Of a stretch of DNA of 64,000 nt, positions 838-38,595 are shown piece by piece. This DNA comes from Thalia democratica (Eukaryota): positions 24,614,001-24,678,000 of the forward strand of contig OZ241833.1 of NCBI GenBank assembly GCA_965202585.1, in the 5' to 3' direction. The notes beneath the pieces were generated by a model that worked only from the letters and a program-made list of their open reading frames with translations, was not told where the DNA came from and made no database searches. Numbering within the stretch: position 1 is the first letter of the stretch; every line of letters starts with the position of its first letter. A program made the translations under genes and the position numbers.

Positions 838-3800
838 ATGAAAATGAAGAAAATCTTAGTTTACGCTTTATTAATTATTTTTCAAGCAAAGGTTACTTCA
901 ACGGAAATGGTAAGAAATATTTATTAATACATTTTTTTAATTTTTATGGTTTATAACATAATTGATTTATTTGCAAACATTAAAAATTAGACATAGCTTT
1001 TTGTTTTTTTCTTGATAAATAGTATTTATGATTTTCTAATTAACTGTTTCATTTTGTTTATAAAATAATATTTGTTTTAGGTCACCAATAATTTAAAAAA
1101 AAAACTTTAATTTCATTTTATAACTTTATTACATTACAACATTACTATGTTAAAAACTTATAATTTGAGCTGGCTTTCGAAAAAACTTACTTCATTACAA
1201 AAAAAAACAACTTAAATACTCAACTAATTTATATAACAAAAAAAGTCAGCGTAAAAGTAAAAACGCAATAAAAAACGCTAAAGTTTGTGTTAAAAAATTA
1301 TAGAACAATTTTTTTTTTATTGCGATGTATTTGTGTTTTAAAACGTTTAAAGATCTTCCTAAATTTGTTAAAACAAAAATTAAAACTTTTAAACATATTT
1401 TTGAAATCTAATGTTTTTCAAATTTATAGTCTAACAGTAGTTTTTGGAACATATTCAAACACTTAATAAATCAGTTATAAAAAAGAGTAAAATTGAATGG
1501 TAGATTGTAACTGTTAAGTTAGAGTATCACAAACATTGTAAAAATTTCTATACAATATATTGTTTTTGCATTTCTAAACTTAAAAGAAAACTTGTAAAAT
1601 ATAAAAGCAGGTAAAACTTGTTTAACTACGTATTATTGCACCACATGTATAAGATATAAGAAAATGGTGTTTTATAGTTTTAGAAAAAATTCCTTTGACT
1701 TTAAGTATTGTACTAAACTAGTTGAAAACATTATAAATTTGTATATGACTTTTAATTTTAAGTAGGTTTCAGCTAGGCTATTTTATGTAAAAACAACAAG
1801 TTAATAAAAACATTACATTAATTTCTTTTTATATTTAAATATTTTGTATAAAGTATACATTTTTTAAGCTTAAACTTTGGCCAGAATATTTGTTTCAACA
1901 TTGCCAAAATAAATATAAAACAGTGTCTTCCACCATTAAAAAACAGCTATTAATAAAATTTAATTAATATAAATAATCAAAATATTATTTTTCTAGTTTT
2001 AAGTTCCTTTAAAATATCAGTTTTAACATTATTTCTTGTAAATTTAAAAGTTTTATATTAACAGTAAGAACTTTTTATAAAATGTTCATTTTTTTAGCTA
2101 ATTTTCCACAAAACAAAAACTACTAAAATTTAGTTAAACATATACAAAACAAAAACTCAAATTTTTAAATCACTTATAAGATAATAAAAAAAAACAAGGT
2201 ATAGTTATGTGTTAAATTTTAAAACTTGGTAAACGCTTTGTTTATAACTTTTCAAACAAAAACATTTAACTTGACAATGCAAAAGTATTGTATTTTAAGT
2301 TTAATTTCAATTTTATTTAGTTGCTCATAATCAAAAGTAGTTTTTTTTGTGTATACTTTTTCATGTGCATCTATATTCAATTCATTGATTTTTTTATTTT
2401 ATAAAGGTCTACCCGAGACTATTTCAAACTATTTTTCAAGCTAGTTTACTTTTTTATTACTCTTTAATTTGATTTATTAACTATAAAGTATTTTACTAAG
2501 TTTTATCAAACACGAAATAAATTAAATCGATGTTAGAAAAGAGCATGTTTGATAAAAGTAATTAAAAACTAAGTTTGTTTTCATGGTTAATTAATGTTCA
2601 AAACAATTCCATTATTATTTAATTCGAAAAGAGAATACGTTAACTTATATTCTCATAACGAAATCTACAGGAAAAATTTAAAACTTTTTAGGTTCATGAA
2701 AATGATAAGCTGAAAGAAAAACTTGCTTCGCAGCCAACATTGTTTTGTAACAAATCGGTTAAAAATACGTGTGTTTGTTCCACATCAAAAGGTTAGTTGT
2801 TGACTTACAAGTGAAAATAGTGTTTTTGTTGAGTAATAATACGTAACACTTTTTATCAGCAACACTTAGGTGAACTAATATTAGTTTTATTATTTATCGA
2901 CCATTTTTATCAACAACATTTCGTTAGTAATATCGAATTTTTTTAAACTTTTTTATTTCTAAAAACCTAAAACTCAATTTAAGATCCAGCACAAAAGGTA
3001 TTTCAAAAAGCAATCAGTTTGACACTGCATAAAATTGAGTACATTTAAAAATGTCGTGTACTCAGTATACTGTCATTTTCTTAATTTTTGTAATTCACCT
3101 TGTCTCGCGGTATCTTTGTACATTAATTGATTCCAAGATAATGACAACCTTACAGTTAAAATTACTTTATTTTTTTATAATTAAATACTAAACATGTTAC
3201 TACATTTTTATTTCAAACAAACAATCATAAAGTTTTATCCATAAACTTATAAAGTTTTTGGGAAAATAAGATTGACTAATCTTTAAAGTTAATTTATTTT
3301 AATCTTACATAGAAATTTTTCAAACTTAAATTCAAGTTTTGCTTTTTGTTGGAACAAAATAAAATTGTTCTAATATAAAATGCCTAATATGATGTTACTA
3401 GGCTAAGCTTTACTTGATATTCTTTTAGTAACCTAATTTTTTTAGTTGCTTCTGCGAAATTTTAAGATTTTTTTGTATTATTGCTGGCTCACCAATATAA
3501 AAGTATTTTATTGTAAACAACTTTATTTATGCCTAAAAAAATAAATTTAATTGAAAAAAACTTTTTTTAATATTTTGATTTAAAATAGATATGTTTAAAA
3601 ATTTTGTACAACTTAAATTGAACTGCTTATTATTAAATTTAAAAGGTTGTTAAATATAGCACTGTTTTTTGTATTATACTAAAACAAAATTTTTTTTTAG
3701 ACGTAAATGGAAACTTTTCTTTGCAGCTCAAATGCGTAAACTTGAAGTTTATAAATTTAACTTTAAACGAAAATTCATTTGAATTTGTTGACGAGTTGTG

Positions 3801-6800: not shown

Positions 6801-9800
6801 TAATAGAATTTTGGAACAAAATAACAATTTAGTCACAATTAATTCCCATAGTTTTGGATGTGCAAAACATCATACAATTAGGTAAATTGTTATATTATTT
6901 AATAAAATGTTAATACTACGCATATTCTGTTAAATTTTTGAATAAATCTAAATTATTTTTTTATACCAGCATCATCGGTAATAGAATGTTAGAGTCAGTT
7001 GAAAACTTTGCATTTGAATGCACTAAGGTTGAAGAATTGTAAGTTTTTAATTATCCATAGTTAACATAATTCAAAAATGTTTATATATTTTTTTTATTAA
7101 CAACTGGTTTATCTTTTCATAGCCTTGATAAAAAATATTTGGACAAAAAAAAATTACGGGCCCATAAACTTAAAAAATAATTAATCTCATAAAAATTTTA
7201 CGTTTTTATGATACAAAAAAACAGTTACCTTTTTATTAAAACTCCTTAATAAACCTTTTTTTAAGATTTCTAAGAAACAACTTGAAGCTGACAACTCTTA
7301 AAGAAAGAGCTTTTGAAGACATTTGCGAGGAAGCTTGTGATATTGGTTTGAGAATACTGTAAGAAGCAAGTTTTGTAACTTACAGAGAAACTTACATTCA
7401 ATTTTTTTCTACTTGATTTTAGCCAATGAAAAAAAATACATGTAATCTATCCAAAACATTTTAACTTTATCACAGAGACTTATCAAACACAAACATCCAA
7501 GAACTACCTGTAGCCGGTCTTGCAAAGCTCACACAGCTGAACTTAAAAAATTCCCCCAAACTGATCAAATTTCCCCACAAAAATTCCCTGCCGTCGCTGA
7601 GAGAGGCCCACGTGACTTACGAGTATCACTGCTGCGCTCTGAAAAGCGCCGAAAAAGAGCGAATGGAGCAAAGAAATGTTTATTTCCGCGCACGAAGTAA
7701 CGCGACGCCTGCGAAAAAGTTGGTCAGACGTCAAACACATGAGAGTTATTTTGACGATGAAAACTACGTGTTTGATGGTCTAGAAGTATACGGTAATTTT
7801 TTGTTTGTTTTGAATAAAAGACAACAGTAATAAAACACTCTTTGCATATGTTTTAGAAATACCGAGCACTGAAAATGAAGACATTGGTTACACCATTGAC
7901 TACAACAAGTAAAAACATACTTTAACAAATAACTCAAACAAATTATCAAAATTGGTTTATTTCAGTAGAAGCGACGCAAGCGTTCTTCCTCCTTTGGTCT
8001 ACGACGTCTTCCGAGATGACGGCACGCCATTGGCCCATTCTGAGCCAATGAAATGCCAGCCTCATCCGGACGACCTGAACCCGTGCGAAGATTTGCTGGG
8101 CAGCAAGCTGGTCAACGTTTCCGCGTGGCTCACGTCCGTCCTGTCTCTCGCCGGAAACGCGACGTGCTTCGTCGTCATCGCCGTGACGTACATCAGAAGC
8201 TCTCGCGCCGACTTCTCCGTCGACAGGCTGCTGATCGCGCACCTGTCGCTCGCCGACTTCCTGATGGGGGCGCACCTGCTCCTGCTGGCGCTGGTGAGCA
8301 CTGTGACGTCAGAGGAGTACTACAGGTTCTGGGTGGGGTGGCAGTTGATGGGCGGTTGCGACGCGGCAGGGTTCATTTCCATGCTTTCAACGGTGATGTC
8401 CATGTACACTTTGAGCCTCATATCCATTGAGCGGTGGTTGGTTTGTTAGATTTTTTTGTGTTTATTGTTTGATTGGATACTTTTTTTCGAAATGAATAAA
8501 TTTAAAACATGTGGTTTCTGTTGGACTTGCTGCCTGTAGGTCGTCGTAGTCTTTTCAAATGGTTTATTAGCTTGATTATGTGCAGTTGTTAGTAAACATC
8601 AGATTGTGATACAGTAAACTTCATAAAATTGTTTTAAAGTTTTAAAGAAGTCTATTAAATTGGTTTAAAATAGTTGGCAACTTTTCTAATTGGCGGGTTA
8701 AATTTGCTAAAAAGATGTATTTCCTTACGAGCAAACAACTAATCAAATAAAAAGTTAATGTTCTAAAATAGAGATAGTCAATGTACAGTCTGCGACGACA
8801 TCTTTTAAATAATAAACTAGTGAAAAAAAAAAAACTTTTGCCATAACAAATTTGAAAAGTGTACTTAATTTGATTTTTAGTGCTTATCAGATGATTGTTT
8901 AATTAAAAAAAGATTCTTTTTTAAGTTTTTTTTGTAAATATTTTACAAACTTAAGCGACTTGCGAAAATATTTACATAAAAAACTTAAAGAAAATTTTTT
9001 TTTTAATTAAACAATCATCTGATAAGCACTAAAAATCAAATTAAGTACACACTTCAAATTTTTTATGGCAAAAGTTTTTTTTTTTTTTTCACTCGTTTGT
9101 TATTTAAAAGATGTCGTCGCAGACTGTACATTGACCATCTCAATTTTAGAACATTATCTTTTTATTTGATTAGTTGTTTGCTCGTAAGGAAATACATATT
9201 TGTTTAAAATTTAAACTTTATACAAACTTTTGTAATACCTTAGCTTAGAACGCCGTATAGATAAATTAGAAGTGAACAAACTTTAAATACTAGATAAGAT
9301 TTAAGAAATTTTAAAACTTTAATTTTCATTCGATCTTTGTTTTGAACTTTTCAAAGATAATGATCTATCTGCGTGATTTTGAATTTAGTTCTCTATTTTT
9401 TATTAAGTTTATGTAACAAACTTTTTGTTTTCTACTAAATAAGTTTAAACTAAAATTAATGCCGTTTTTAAAAAAATGTGTTTTTGATAACAAACTTAGC
9501 TGAATTTATTATGTTAAATTCAAGTCAAGTTTTTTATCAACAAGTAAACTTGAACTAGCTACTAGTTGCGTTTAGAATATTCGGAAGCTGTTTGACAGCT
9601 AAATTTTTTTTTTTTTATTTAGTTTGCAAATTCAACGCCGACTAATCAACTTAACTTTTTAGTCTCGGTAGCCTTTTCCATACTATTAAGTAACTTTTAT
9701 GTGTTTGTTCAAATTTTTAAAAACAAAACTAAATTTTTAAATATTCGCAATTTTATTACTGTTAACTTATAAATAAATAAACTTTCCTTTGAATGATTGT

Positions 9801-34400: not shown

Positions 34401-37400
34401 AATAATAGTTTTCTTTAATAATATTAATATTAAATTTATTTAAACAAAAGCAACATCGTTTCTCCTTACAGGGGTCTTCAGGACTGCAAAATAAAAAATA
34501 AGTAGATGATAACTTAATAAATAGTGCAAACTAATTAATATAATCAAATCTATAAAATTTGAAAAAATCTTTACGTAAGTTTAACATTGTTAAGGTGAAC
34601 AGAAAATAATTAAAATAACAAAAATAAAGTTTTTAAATAGCAATATTTATACTTACAAGCGTTGATATGTTTTATACATTTTAAGATATAGCTTATAACA
34701 ACACAAATCAAAAATGGCTTTTAACAAATAGACCTGCAACTTGGAAAAAAATTGAAATATCACTTGCTGACAAAAAACAAAATTAAATAAAAGACAAGAG
34801 CTTTTTTACACCTGTCCGCACTTTAGAAAATTCTACTTTAAAACTTAGCGTATTTATAGCTGTTAATTTAGTTTTTGCTTGTTAATTTTTAAGGTACCTT
34901 TGTTTGTTAAAAGCCATTTTTGATTTGTGATTAACTATATCTTAAACTGTATAAGACATTTCAACGCTTGTAAGTATAAATATTGCTATTTAAAAACTTT
35001 ATTTTTGTTAATTTAATTATTTTCTGTTCACCTTAACAATGTTAAACTTACGTAATGATTTTTTTTAACTTTATAGATTTGATTATATTAATTATTTTGC
35101 ACTATTTATTAAGTTATCCATCGTCTTAGTTTTTATTTTGCAGGCCTGAAGATTCCTGTAAGGAAACGATGTTGAATTTGTTTAAATAAATTTAACATTA
35201 TTATTGTCTTCGAAATAAGTTTTGTCGAGACCTTTTGTGCTAAAGAAATACCCTTTACATATACCCATTCTTTCTTCTTATTGTTATTAGTTTTTTTTTT
35301 TTTCATATGTTATTTTCTTTCCTTTTATTATTATTATTGTTATTGCTCTTATATATATGTATATTATTTAAATATTATTCTTTTATTTATTATTAATATT
35401 TTAAGTCATTAATTGTTTTAAAAAAATATATATAATTGTTAATATAGTAATATAATTAATAACGAAATAAAAATTAATGATAGTAATAAAAATAATAATA
35501 ACATCAATATCAAAAATAAATGTAATGAAGTATATCAACAATATTCTTAAAAGTTATAAAAAGAAGAAAAATGATAAAAATATCGATATCAACAAAAAGA
35601 CTAGTGTTATTACTTTTTTTTCATATTATTTTAATTTATATCGATCTTTCACACCTGTTTTTAAAGTCACTTTTAATCAACAATTATCCTTATTCAAATC
35701 CCTCAACAAAGTTTCAAAAAATATGCTAAAGAAATATTTTTTTAACAAGAGCAAGCATTTGTTCCAAGAAACATCAAAAACTTTTTATTTGAAAAAATAT
35801 TATTTTGTTCAGATTTTTCGACCGGTGCGCGGACGTGCACGACGGGGAAGTTTCGTCGAAGGGGGATTCCCTCGAAGACAAGATCGTCGGGTCGACGGTG
35901 GTGGACTTCAGGGGGGAGGCGATCACGTTCAAGGCGACCACCAACGGCACCCTCCAGACGCTGCAGCACTGCATAGAGGTGATGCAGCTGAGAGAGGAGA
36001 AGCTGCTGAAGAAGATCGAGAAGGAGAGGGAGCGCAGGAGGCGGTTTGTGACGTCATAAATTCTGTTTTTAAGCGTCGTGATGAGAGACATAAATTACAA
36101 AGTTATTTTAAAAAGTATTGTTCAATTCGACAGCTTTTTAAGTTTTTCTATCAACTAACACTGTAGTACTGTTTTGTTTTATAAACAAACCTTGATTATC
36201 TATACATATGTTTAGTGTGCCTTTTAAAAGACTTACAAGACTTTATACAAAAAAAAATTGTTCTCTGATATCTCTTAGCATTATTTTACACAAAAACACC
36301 ACCAGGCTGATAGAGAAGCACGAGTCGGAGCTGCGTCAGGCGCGCCGGCAAGTTTCGCTGATGGGGAGTCCCGACTTGGAGGAGGGGCCGAACAGCGAGA
36401 TGACGGAGGAGATGTTCTACGAGTGCCTGGAGGCGTACCACGACAAGCAGGACCGCGTGGACGAGGACATGCGGGTGAGCAAGAACCTGCAGAAGAAGGC
36501 CGTCACCGAGAAGCCCAAGGTTGTGACGTCATAATTGTTTTTGAGCGTTTGACGGCTGTTTGCGAATAAACTTCGGAACATGTTTTTTATGCTTATTGTT
36601 TTTAATTTATATTTGTCTTATCATTTTGCTATATTTATACTATTTTGTTTTAGAATGTATAAGCTTAGAATTTTGTAAATAAAAGTATGTCTATAGTGTT
36701 CTTCCCTTTTGAATAGGTTGTAGTTATTTCTATTATTTACTTTTTATCCAGCTCGGATACTCACAGATATTTTTTTTTGAAAATATAGCGAAACTTTGTA
36801 AATTGATATTGTAAGAGTTTTTTCATAAAAAACGCCTAATTTTCTCACTTTTAGAATGTCTCGTCGGAAATTTTTCTTCCAATAAAACTGATTTTAACAT
36901 TTTGCCCAATTATCATTAAGCTCGGAGGTAATTTACATATCGATTAACCATTTTTATAAATTTCACAGTCTTTGAACTAGATTAGTTGTTTTGTCAACTT
37001 ATAAGAAAGTAGAACAAACATTAGTACTTCATATACAATTTGTAATCAGTCTAAATTCACAGCAAAGACACAAGCATTCAGACAAGTTGGAGCAGCGAAT
37101 AAAAGCTCACCTCACTGAAAGCATGGCTCTTCCCAACGAAAACGACGAAAATTCGTGGGAACTTTTCGCTGAAGAAGGTGAACTCAAGGTAAGATACTTT
37201 TCTTTTTTTAATGTTTATCATTGTTCTGCAAAAACAAATATGAAGTGCTTGTTTCAGTTTTTTAATGTACTTTTAGTGCATAAATTTTCAGTTTCTTTAT
37301 TATTATACAGAAAATATGTTTAATTCTAAACAGTAAGGCTATCAACATACACTTTTCGCTAAAACCAAAATTAAAACACAAATGATTACTACAATGTCTA

Positions 37401-38595
37401 CAAGAATAACAAACACTAATCTTAGTATTTCTGGGTATTTGTTTATAGAAATTTCACCAGCCAAATTTCTTTTGTTTTTCAAAGGTGTACCGAAGAGAGC
37501 TGGTCATCGACGACCGGATATGCGACCCGCTGAAGGCAATCCACAGCATCGGACTGGTCACCGCCAGGGAAATGTGCCACTACTTCTGGGACACCTCCTA
37601 CCGGCTGGAGTGGGAAGGCACCATCGACAGTTTCAGGTGACAGTTGTAAATTTTAACCAAAATGGTGAAAATATACCTATTGAGCTGAAGAAGAATCTTA
37701 ATTTTAATGATAAAGTCTGAATTTAATTTTAGTTTTTTAAAGAAATTTCAGACAAGTCTGCTAAAAAAATGATTTCAATTCCAATTTTTTTTGAAAATAT
37801 TTAATTCTTTTAGGGTAATTACAGTAATTAAGTTTTTTTAAACCAACTGCAGGGTGATAGAGGCGCCGGCGGAACTGACCACCATAATATACCAGACCCA
37901 CAAGCGGGTGTGGCCCTCCGCCCAGCGCGACTGCTTGTACGTGTCCAACATGCTCAAAGTTGAGGACCAGCCGATGCCAAAGGACGGCAGGAAGCCCCAC
38001 GACACCTGGATGGTCTGCAACTTCAGTGTGGACCACGAAAAGGTTGGAAAATTTGTTGGATTATAACGGTTTTGCTTTTTTTCGTAGTTTTTAGGTTTGT
38101 TAATCTTTATTTTCACTTTACCAAATTGAATTTACTAAAATTTGATCAGTACTAATATTTATTTTTTTAAGCTATTACTTGTACTATATATTTTTCTCAC
38201 AACTTGCGTCTATTCATATGTATCGCCTATAAAAATATTTCAATAACATATACTGTTATCAAAAATTATAATGTAACTTCCCGGTTTAAAATAAACCTTA
38301 TCAAAATATTGCAACTAAATATCACCACCAGGCGGAGCCGGTGGGCGGTTGCTGCCGCGCCGAATGCGACATCGCGCTCATCTGCCAGACGTACGTCGCA
38401 GCGCCACCCGACGGAGAGAAGGTGAGCCGGCGGGACCTGAGGTGCGACATCGTGTACGTGGCGGAGGTGAACCCGGGAGGGTGGGCGCCCGCCTCCGTCC
38501 TCCGGACCATCTACAAGCGGGAGTACCCCAAGTTCCTGCGCAAGTTCACCGCCTACGTGCAGGAGAAGACCAAGGACAAGGAGATATGGTTTTAA
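28430..38595 (+). CDS. CERT1: Ceramide transfer protein (PH - middle region/FFAT - START domain), 9 exons, 583 aa
   Basis: Exons: 28430-28582, 28795-28925, 32345-32635, 35813-36043, 36306-36519, 37063-37188, 37485-37636, 37853-38042, 38332-38595 (1752 nt). Motifs: [16 protein letters not shown]; [13 protein letters not shown]; NDSVWYLRA; LRRQGSLMS serine-rich motif; [13 protein letters not shown]; [11 protein letters not shown]; [17 protein letters not shown]; [37 protein letters not shown]. Confidence 0.97.
31587..31800 (+). repeat. hAT-like single end with tandem AAAACCTGGAA subterminal repeats, CERT intron 2
   Basis: Starts cagagttgcca, followed by 6-7 (A)AACC(T/C)GGA copies. No matching right end found. 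Confidence 0.55.
34425..35200. repeat. Long inverted repeat (foldback) in CERT intron 3
   Basis: Arms of about 300 bp (about 34425-34735 and 34900-35200): ttaacattgttaaggtgaacagaaaataatt pairs with aattattttctgttcaccttaacaatgttaa, and tatacttacaagcgttg pairs with caacgcttgtaagtata. Spacer about 165 bp. Confidence 0.9.

Follow-up and report, generated by a model that had tools for sequence, protein, structure and literature searches.

The window analysed here is a 64-kb stretch of the genome of the salp Thalia democratica (contig OZ241833.1, positions 24,614,001 to 24,678,000 of the forward strand). Its plus strand carries a CERT gene, and our subject is the first nucleotides (nt) of two consecutive introns of this gene, introns 4 and 5, each of which opens with a full cAMP response element (CRE), the palindrome TGACGTCA. 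The exon translations cover the conserved middle region of the protein, and the last exon matches the CERT START domain in PDB (E = 1e-29) as well as the Pfam START domain. Exon c encodes a region with a ten-residue stretch that we take to resemble the FFAT motif of human CERT. The window has 26% GC and its GC-rich exons have sharp bounds. The exons flanking introns 4 and 5 reach a GC content of 0.59-0.62, with 92-93% GC at third codon positions (GC3), in agreement with the very GC-rich exons that the original prediction had described upstream of the two donors. An Rfam scan of the window returned no RNA family, and Tandem Repeats Finder (TRF) found no tandem repeat at either intron start. The features of the region are listed in Table 1.

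Table 1 Features of the CERT gene from exon b to exon d, in window coordinates.
Feature	Position	Strand	Description
CERT exon b	35813..36043	+	231 nt; GC ~0.62, GC3 0.92; ends ...AGGAGGCG, intron phase 2; from reading frame and translation; 88% identity to Tara contig L063
Intron 4	36044..36305	+	262 nt; GT..AG, donor GTTTGT; orthologous intron in L063/L069/L070
14-mer, copy 1 (TTGTGACGTCATAA)	36046..36059	+	CRE core TGACGTCA at 36049-36056, intron +6 to +13
Block 2, copy 1 (TGTTTTTAAGCGT)	36064..36076	+	from repeat scan of the window
Third, weak collinear block shared with intron 5 (TACTGTTTTGTTTTATAA)	36167..36184	+	offset 471; p ~0.02-0.03
CERT exon c	36306..36519	+	214 nt; GC ~0.6; encodes the region with the ten-residue stretch; 92% identity to L063
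Intron 5	36520..37062	+	543 nt; GT..AG, donor GTTGTG; orthologues in four Tara lineages/contig sets
14-mer, copy 2 (TTGTGACGTCATAA)	36521..36534	+	CRE core at 36524-36531, intron +5 to +12
Block 2, copy 2 (TGTTTTTGAGCGT)	36536..36548	+	from repeat scan of the window
Partner of the third collinear block (TACTATTTTGTTTTAGAA)	36638..36655	+	collinear with 36167..36184
CERT exon d	starts 37063	+	runs 37063-37188; AT-rich

Intron 4 begins with GTTTGTGACGTCATAAATTCTGTTTTTAAGCGT, which parses as GTTTG-TGACGTCA-TAA, and intron 5 begins with GTTGTGACGTCATAATTGTTTTTGAGCGT, which parses as GTTG-TGACGTCA-TAA. The original prediction had described an exact 14-mer at both intron starts, a CRE palindrome in the core of this 14-mer, a second block common to both introns, and unrelated ends of the upstream exons. 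All four observations hold when the sequences are compared, and the second block (TGTTTTTRAGCGT, hereafter block 2) is identical at 12 of 13 positions between its copies. GACGTCAT occurs twice in the window, both times at the 5' end of one of these two introns. The 13-mer form of the word, TGTGACGTCATAA, is found in the window at these two sites only (0.05 expected), and two copies were seen in none of 100 shuffles.

The six CERT donors in the window are GTTTGT (32636), GTTTGT and GTTGTG (introns 4 and 5), GTAAGA (37189), GTGACA (37637) and GTTGGA (38043). The donors of introns 4 and 5 had been called non-consensus. This is correct with respect to the general animal consensus, but locally they are ordinary, as T at +3 is found in four of the six CERT donors, these two included, and is the local norm. 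The TAA of the motif is in frame behind both exons. As an in-frame stop it was set aside as not significant, as two of the three frames meet a stop in the motif anyway.

Counts in the 802-Mb assembly revealed a large excess of the word. TGACGTCA has 56,755 sites and its reversed form 9,487 (a 6-fold difference); for the 13-mer TGTGACGTCATAA the numbers are 2,985 and 23 (130-fold). The CpG-to-TpG form of the 13-mer has 416 sites and the CpG-to-CpA form 264, and the intact form is 4.4 times commoner than both combined. T is ~2.8 times commoner than C in this genome and CpG is mildly depleted (observed/expected 0.73 in the AT-rich parts and 1.08 in the GC-rich parts). The CpG transition forms are rare although T is abundant and the depletion of CpG is only mild, and the excess belongs to the intact core. 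The arrangement of intron 4, with GGTTWG directly before the core, occurs at 177 sites against 0 for the control, and GGTT lies within 25 nt upstream of the core at 7,164 sites against 1,474.

Among the first 30 sites of the 13-mer, roughly one in three falls in a single non-coding repeat family (loci L020-L030, G000:C1 ~3.0-5.1 Mb). Its copies are at least 2 kb long and contain three TGACGTCA words, ~270 and ~670 nt apart, one of them inside the identical 13-mer. Among the copies, the CRE cores are kept at 0.89-0.97, against 0.52-0.86 for the flanks. Another locus (L013, G000:C1:1276284-1276617) has six TGACGTCA words spaced 33-108 nt apart, including two steps of 51 nt. Its unit is ~51 nt long (...GGTTCGAAYTG.GAGTTGAYGT.TTATGACGTCAGCGAGTTC...), and stops fill both strands, so this locus is not an exon.

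We profiled the position of the word relative to exons in 31 unselected TGACGTCA sites from another chromosome (C1, 0.10-0.45 Mb); the border statistics as a whole rest on 62 short loci and on pattern counts. Strands were assigned from splice dinucleotides, open reading frames and, where possible, Pfam domains; calls from composition only are unreliable at low scores, and L003 was miscalled in this way. About 7 of the 31 sites are the first copy behind a donor, where the core starts at +2 to +26 and mostly at +6 to +9. Another 4 are extra tandem copies behind such first copies, 4-5 lie just upstream of acceptors, 1 is clearly exonic and ~12 lie elsewhere. About a third to 40% of the sampled sites are thus within ~30 nt of an exon border, on the donor and acceptor sides both. 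This share is a large excess, as intron borders of up to 30 nt make up hardly more than a few percent of the sequence. Pfam domains fix the coding strand at three donor-side loci (L003, TSP1; L047, Sushi; L007, claudin) and at one acceptor-side locus (L045, TSP1). Both CREs in the window start at intron +5/+6, and an enrichment of the word near donors, as the original prediction had anticipated, is present both among the sampled sites and in the GGTTWG count. The location is unlike that of a promoter or enhancer site, with both window sites and the said share of the sample at internal exon borders.

The flanks of the core are also ordered. A purine on one side and a pyrimidine on the other (R/Y flanks) surround it in 30 of the 31 sites. 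Read on the sense strand, donor-side sites are G-core-TA(A) and acceptor-side sites are TTA-core-C or TTA-core-T. This asymmetry is not tied to the transcript strand but has the exon as its mirror axis, with the G/C flank toward the exon and the TAA/TTA flank toward the intron (L045 and L039 included).

Two further arrangements were observed at sampled loci. In the TSP1 gene at L003, the exact 13-mer opens two consecutive introns 331 nt apart (G000:C1:270635 and 270966), and this intron pair has no convincing likeness past the motif. Two copies closely precede an acceptor at L045, which lies 14 kb from L003 and probably belongs to the same gene. Minisatellites with a CRE-led unit lie close to donors at L012 (~1500-1600, minus strand), at L057/L007 (~2100-2210) and at L050 (1500-1690). 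The unit is ~24 nt long at L012 (GTGACGTCATAATAAAAACACTTT) and ~34 nt at L057, and some copies have decayed to TGATGTCA.

We compared introns 4 and 5 with those of related salps, using short Tara Oceans metagenome contigs that were retrieved by exon-by-exon protein searches. Every related salp lineage in the sample has both introns. Compared with L063, intron 4 matches at 16/16 of its first positions, against 54-59% identity in the rest of the intron and 61% overall. The stretch from +17 to +40, which holds block 2, is 54% identical, and block 2 does not rise above the intron background. In intron 5, the core is intact in L067 and L068 and also in the more distant L064-L066, where it lies 11 nt further from the donor and between other flanks. 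L063 keeps 7 of the 8 core positions in intron 5 (TGACGTAA). The intron after exon a is without the word in both lineages compared (GTTTGTTTCGG here, GTTCGTTTC in the relative), and so is the intron after the AT-rich exon d (GTAAGA here, GTAATA in the relative). Across these alignments, the presence or absence of the word is position-specific and stable between lineages. Because the core is kept while its surroundings turn over, the comparison indicates that the core is under selection and is not a decaying relic.

Intron 4 contains another conserved element. A 20-nt block (36138-36157, TTAAGTTTTTCTATCAACTA, running on into ...ACTAAC) is almost identical in L063, in surroundings of ~59% identity. 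The conserved block includes the branch-point-like ACTAAC, ~140 nt before the acceptor.

The likeness between the starts of introns 4 and 5 extends past the core into block 2, and this longer likeness is private to the locus. The core followed within 8 nt by TGTTTTTRAGCG is found in introns 4 and 5 only in 802 Mb. Block 2 alone has 228 genome sites, from which ~0.004 chance co-occurrences are expected among all 13-mer sites. Over the first 70 nt the likeness of the two introns has a z of 12, all of it owed to a stretch of ~32 nt that aligns locally; past +35, z falls to ~1. The original prediction had called the whole shared sequence homologous. With ~3,000 copies of the 13-mer core in the genome, the 14-mer alone needs no common descent; the likeness in block 2 does need it. 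The related salp shows the same likeness between its introns 4 and 5, and the copying would therefore predate that split. As block 2 is not conserved above background, we interpret it as a trace of history rather than of function.

We propose that two layers are superimposed at this locus, a genome-wide CRE signal and a local copy, and we hold this combined explanation with middling confidence. The first layer is the firmer one: very probably, each of the two intron starts carries a genome-wide, selectively maintained full CRE/ATF palindrome. The CRE, as a rule flanked by R on one side and by Y on the opposite side, would be set a few nt inside introns, beside exons. On the donor side, the core would abut or overlap a donor of the form GT-T-N-G-T, whose G at +5 and T at +6 would be the first letters of GTGACGTCA. 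This overlap, together with the AT-rich intron sequence (TAA) behind the core, could produce a shared 14-mer without common descent. For the second layer, we think it reasonably probable that ~30 nt were copied between the intron starts. The core, T-run and AGCGT of one start would have been copied into the other, most likely by template switching or by gene conversion over a short tract, the two CRE-anchored sites being separated by 476 nt. This event may have preceded the split of the sampled salp lineages, leaving a copied tail (block 2) without visible constraint.

As for how the word is read, we tentatively favour binding of double-stranded DNA by a CREB/ATF-type bZIP dimer at exon edges over an RNA element. 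The bound dimer could act co-transcriptionally, by exon marking or by slowing the polymerase, where donors are weak by general animal standards. The perfect 8-bp palindrome, its R/Y flanks, the intact CpG core and the two-sided mirror arrangement point toward a DNA site, as does the maintenance of the word in a non-coding repeat and at many non-genic sites. The original prediction had offered a splicing enhancer or a bZIP site as explanations. Both are possible, and the positional enrichment is present. However, the mirrored word on the acceptor side, the repeat-family copies and the sites far from exons are more in keeping with a site on double-stranded DNA than with an RNA signal specific to donors. 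A wider proposal, which we put forward as possible but doubtful, is that salps recruited the CRE as a chromatin-level code for exon edges. In it, CREB/ATF-type dimers on the first or last letters of introns would mark GC-rich exons against a very AT-rich background and aid the use of the unusual GTT donors by the spliceosome, and the palindromes that neighbouring introns share would seed short exchange between intron starts, as in CERT introns 4 and 5.

Several points weigh against this two-layer explanation and its DNA-bound dimer. The border sample is small and comes from one gene-dense stretch of 0.35 Mb, and so overstates the genome-wide share of sites at exon borders. A large part of the genome-wide TGACGTCA count sits in repeat families, and the exact arrangement of intron 4 is limited to 177 sites. 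A tract of 30 nt is short for classical gene conversion, and the weak collinear block at +120 to +140 might instead stem from the duplication of an entire intron long ago. There is no established reason why a transcription factor site should lie as close to splice sites as +2 to +16; so tight a spacing is more usual for RNA signals. At donors, the word nearly always reads G-TGACGTCA-TA on the sense strand. Lastly, of the two decayed forms, the one that could still form G-U pairs exceeds the other 1.6-fold, which slightly favours a reading on RNA.

An element of this kind in the RNA is, in our view, somewhat unlikely. It would consist of UGACGUCA, extended by G-U and A-U pairs to UUGUGACGUCAUAA, and would act in the pre-mRNA beside the 5' splice site, either as a protein-bound intronic splicing enhancer or as a 'zipper' that, being self-complementary, pairs with a second copy in the transcript. 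It would suit the core starts of +2 to +16 that are seen at most donor-side sites, and the donor sense strand G...TA keeps 12-14 nt of RNA self-complementarity through G-U pairs. The decay counts given above (416 against 264) lean the same way, but the bias is too weak to count and is confounded by repeats; it could stem from transcription-linked mutation asymmetry or from non-independent repeat copies. The G-U extension would not survive the mirrored flanks on the acceptor side, which read A...C on the sense strand, and many copies lie in repeats and far from exons.

Pairing between copies was considered as well. Copies are often paired, either 17-50 nt apart or in consecutive introns (L003; CERT introns 4 and 5), and in a 531-nt fragment the minimum-energy and centroid folds both pair the two 14-mers. 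However, this helix is gone in a context of 1,361 nt and the fold of the fragment is no stabler than those of shuffles (z = -0.7), and we dropped the long-range pairing as support. The alignments give no covariation support, and the core change seen in intron 5 of the related salp is uncompensated. A search of the window found no GACGTCAT partner near the 3' end of either intron, which argues against an intron-bridging pairing.

For the second layer, the main alternative to a copied tract is that one intron is a copy of the other, made by reverse splicing or local duplication, and that later decay spared the likeness of the first 30 nt only. We regard this as improbable. It draws on a third, weak collinear block (+121 to +142 in one intron against +116 to +137 in the other; p ~0.02-0.03), with which the introns share three collinear blocks at nearly the same offset (475 nt for the 14-mer, 472 nt for block 2 and 471 nt for the third block). 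Beyond +35, the main diagonal band holds eight 6-mer matches against a mean of 1.8, a number reached by 0.6% of the other bands, and the global score is at the 98th percentile of intron controls. A review gives indirect precedent in a pelagic tunicate (PMC3443670). However, the local score beyond +35 is at background and the 3' ends are unlike. Block 2 also diverges as fast as the other intron sequence, so that a whole-intron copy of such age that the remainder has been lost should have lost block 2 as well.

It is highly improbable that the word has no function and reflects base composition, the behaviour of CpG or some local oddity of mutation, for instance minisatellite activity close to donors. 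Donor-proximal tandem repeats with the word are common (L012, L050 and L057), but this explanation has to meet the 130-fold and 6-fold excesses, the predominance of the intact core over its transition variants, the conservation in orthologous introns with presence and absence stable by position, and the lack of a tandem repeat at these sites. The original suggestion that the introns are relics of an introner-like mobile family with the motif at its 5' end is largely refuted: the motif does recur at many intron starts and one repeat family has the identical 13-mer, but that family shares just the 13-mer with these introns, BLAST of 36044-37062 against the whole genome matches the locus itself only, the composite of core and block 2 is unique, strong likeness ends after ~32 nt, the borders have no terminal inverted repeat, flanking direct repeat or target-site duplication, whole-length likeness is absent, and both introns occur in all sampled related lineages with the core kept while the flanks turn over. 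We also considered a recombination hotspot like M26 of S. pombe, with GC-biased conversion enriching the exons, and rejected it because the GC enrichment stops sharply at exon borders. Hotspots should moreover erode rather than persist.

Of the known systems, the CRE is the closest. Sites for CREB/ATF factors have purine/pyrimidine flanks and need an intact central CpG. The word at the CERT introns is the same 8-bp palindrome, TGACGTCA, with its central CpG intact. Classical CREs lie in promoters and enhancers, whereas here the word is present tens of thousands of times in a genome of 26% GC, and a large share of the sites flank internal exons on either side, at distances of up to ~30 nt from the border. 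Intronic splicing enhancers downstream of weak 5' splice sites include U-rich TIA-1 sites, G-runs and the YCAY clusters of Nova. The CERT words resemble them in lying within the first ~20 nt of the intron behind non-consensus donors, in the T-run after the core and in containing YCAY (TCAT). They differ in that the known enhancers are strand-specific and non-palindromic, whereas the CRE word is also mirrored upstream of acceptors and present in repeats. At exon 5 of CD45, CTCF is a DNA-bound factor that affects splicing through polymerase pausing; cases are few and lie downstream of alternative exons. If a bZIP dimer reads exon edges, such pausing would be a working analogy only, as the signal here is widespread and two-sided.

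Three systems in which intron sequences are copied were also compared. Introners (Micromonas and fungi; PMC3879977, PMC4540971, PMC3609843) likewise give different introns a shared sequence, but they are multi-copy and alike end to end, whereas CERT introns 4 and 5 are single-copy and alike over ~32 nt only. Intron transposition (Oikopleura and Mycosphaerella; PMC3443670) resembles the present case in that two introns of one pelagic-tunicate gene are alike and the exons are not; it differs in that the likeness of the CERT introns is confined to the 5' end. In the 'Mirage' minisatellites of amphioxus splice junctions (PMC3087553), exon-intron junction sequence is copied, and other donors in this genome carry tandem CRE units. 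Unlike Mirage, the CERT locus has no array, the exon ends are outside the copy, and the copies are 476 nt apart in different introns. Our literature search yielded no publication that describes TGACGTCA next to splice sites or that treats the splice signals of salps; the motifs reported in the Salpa genome paper are G-quadruplexes and do not include this CRE word.

How exons are found when splice signals are degenerate is an open question, and here an ordinary transcription factor palindrome stands in an extraordinary place, thousands of times, in a relative of vertebrates. If the wider proposal of an exon-edge code is true, it would add a DNA-read layer to exon definition in a chordate relative. 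Reading on DNA would make this a widespread case of a sequence-specific DNA-binding protein in exon definition; reading on RNA would make the word a new palindromic splicing signal. The private 30-nt copy suggests that shared palindromes can mediate exchange between introns, which bears on the use of intron likeness as evidence of intron gain. The locus is also a compact test bed, with adjacent marked introns, unmarked neighbours and natural variants in which the core is moved by 11 nt or has one change.

Some further likenesses were seen among the splice sites of the CERT gene. The acceptors of exon c (36297-36307) and of the last CERT exon (38323-38333) have an 11-mer in common, CACCACCAGGC (CACCACCAG|GC), and no likeness further upstream; with one mismatch allowed, chance would give the 10-mer CACCACCAGG only 0.38 times in the window. 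Exon c has a different acceptor in the distant Tara lineage L064 (TTATTTTCAG). The donor after exon e (37637-37646) is GTGACAGTTG, which opens like the CRE half-site GTGAC and is not a full site. The AT-rich exon d (37063-37188; 1354-1488 in L064) has a canonical donor in both lineages, GTAAGA or GTAATA. The GC-rich CERT exons, unlike exon d, precede GTT or GTG donors, which hints that exon composition and donor class go together in this gene.

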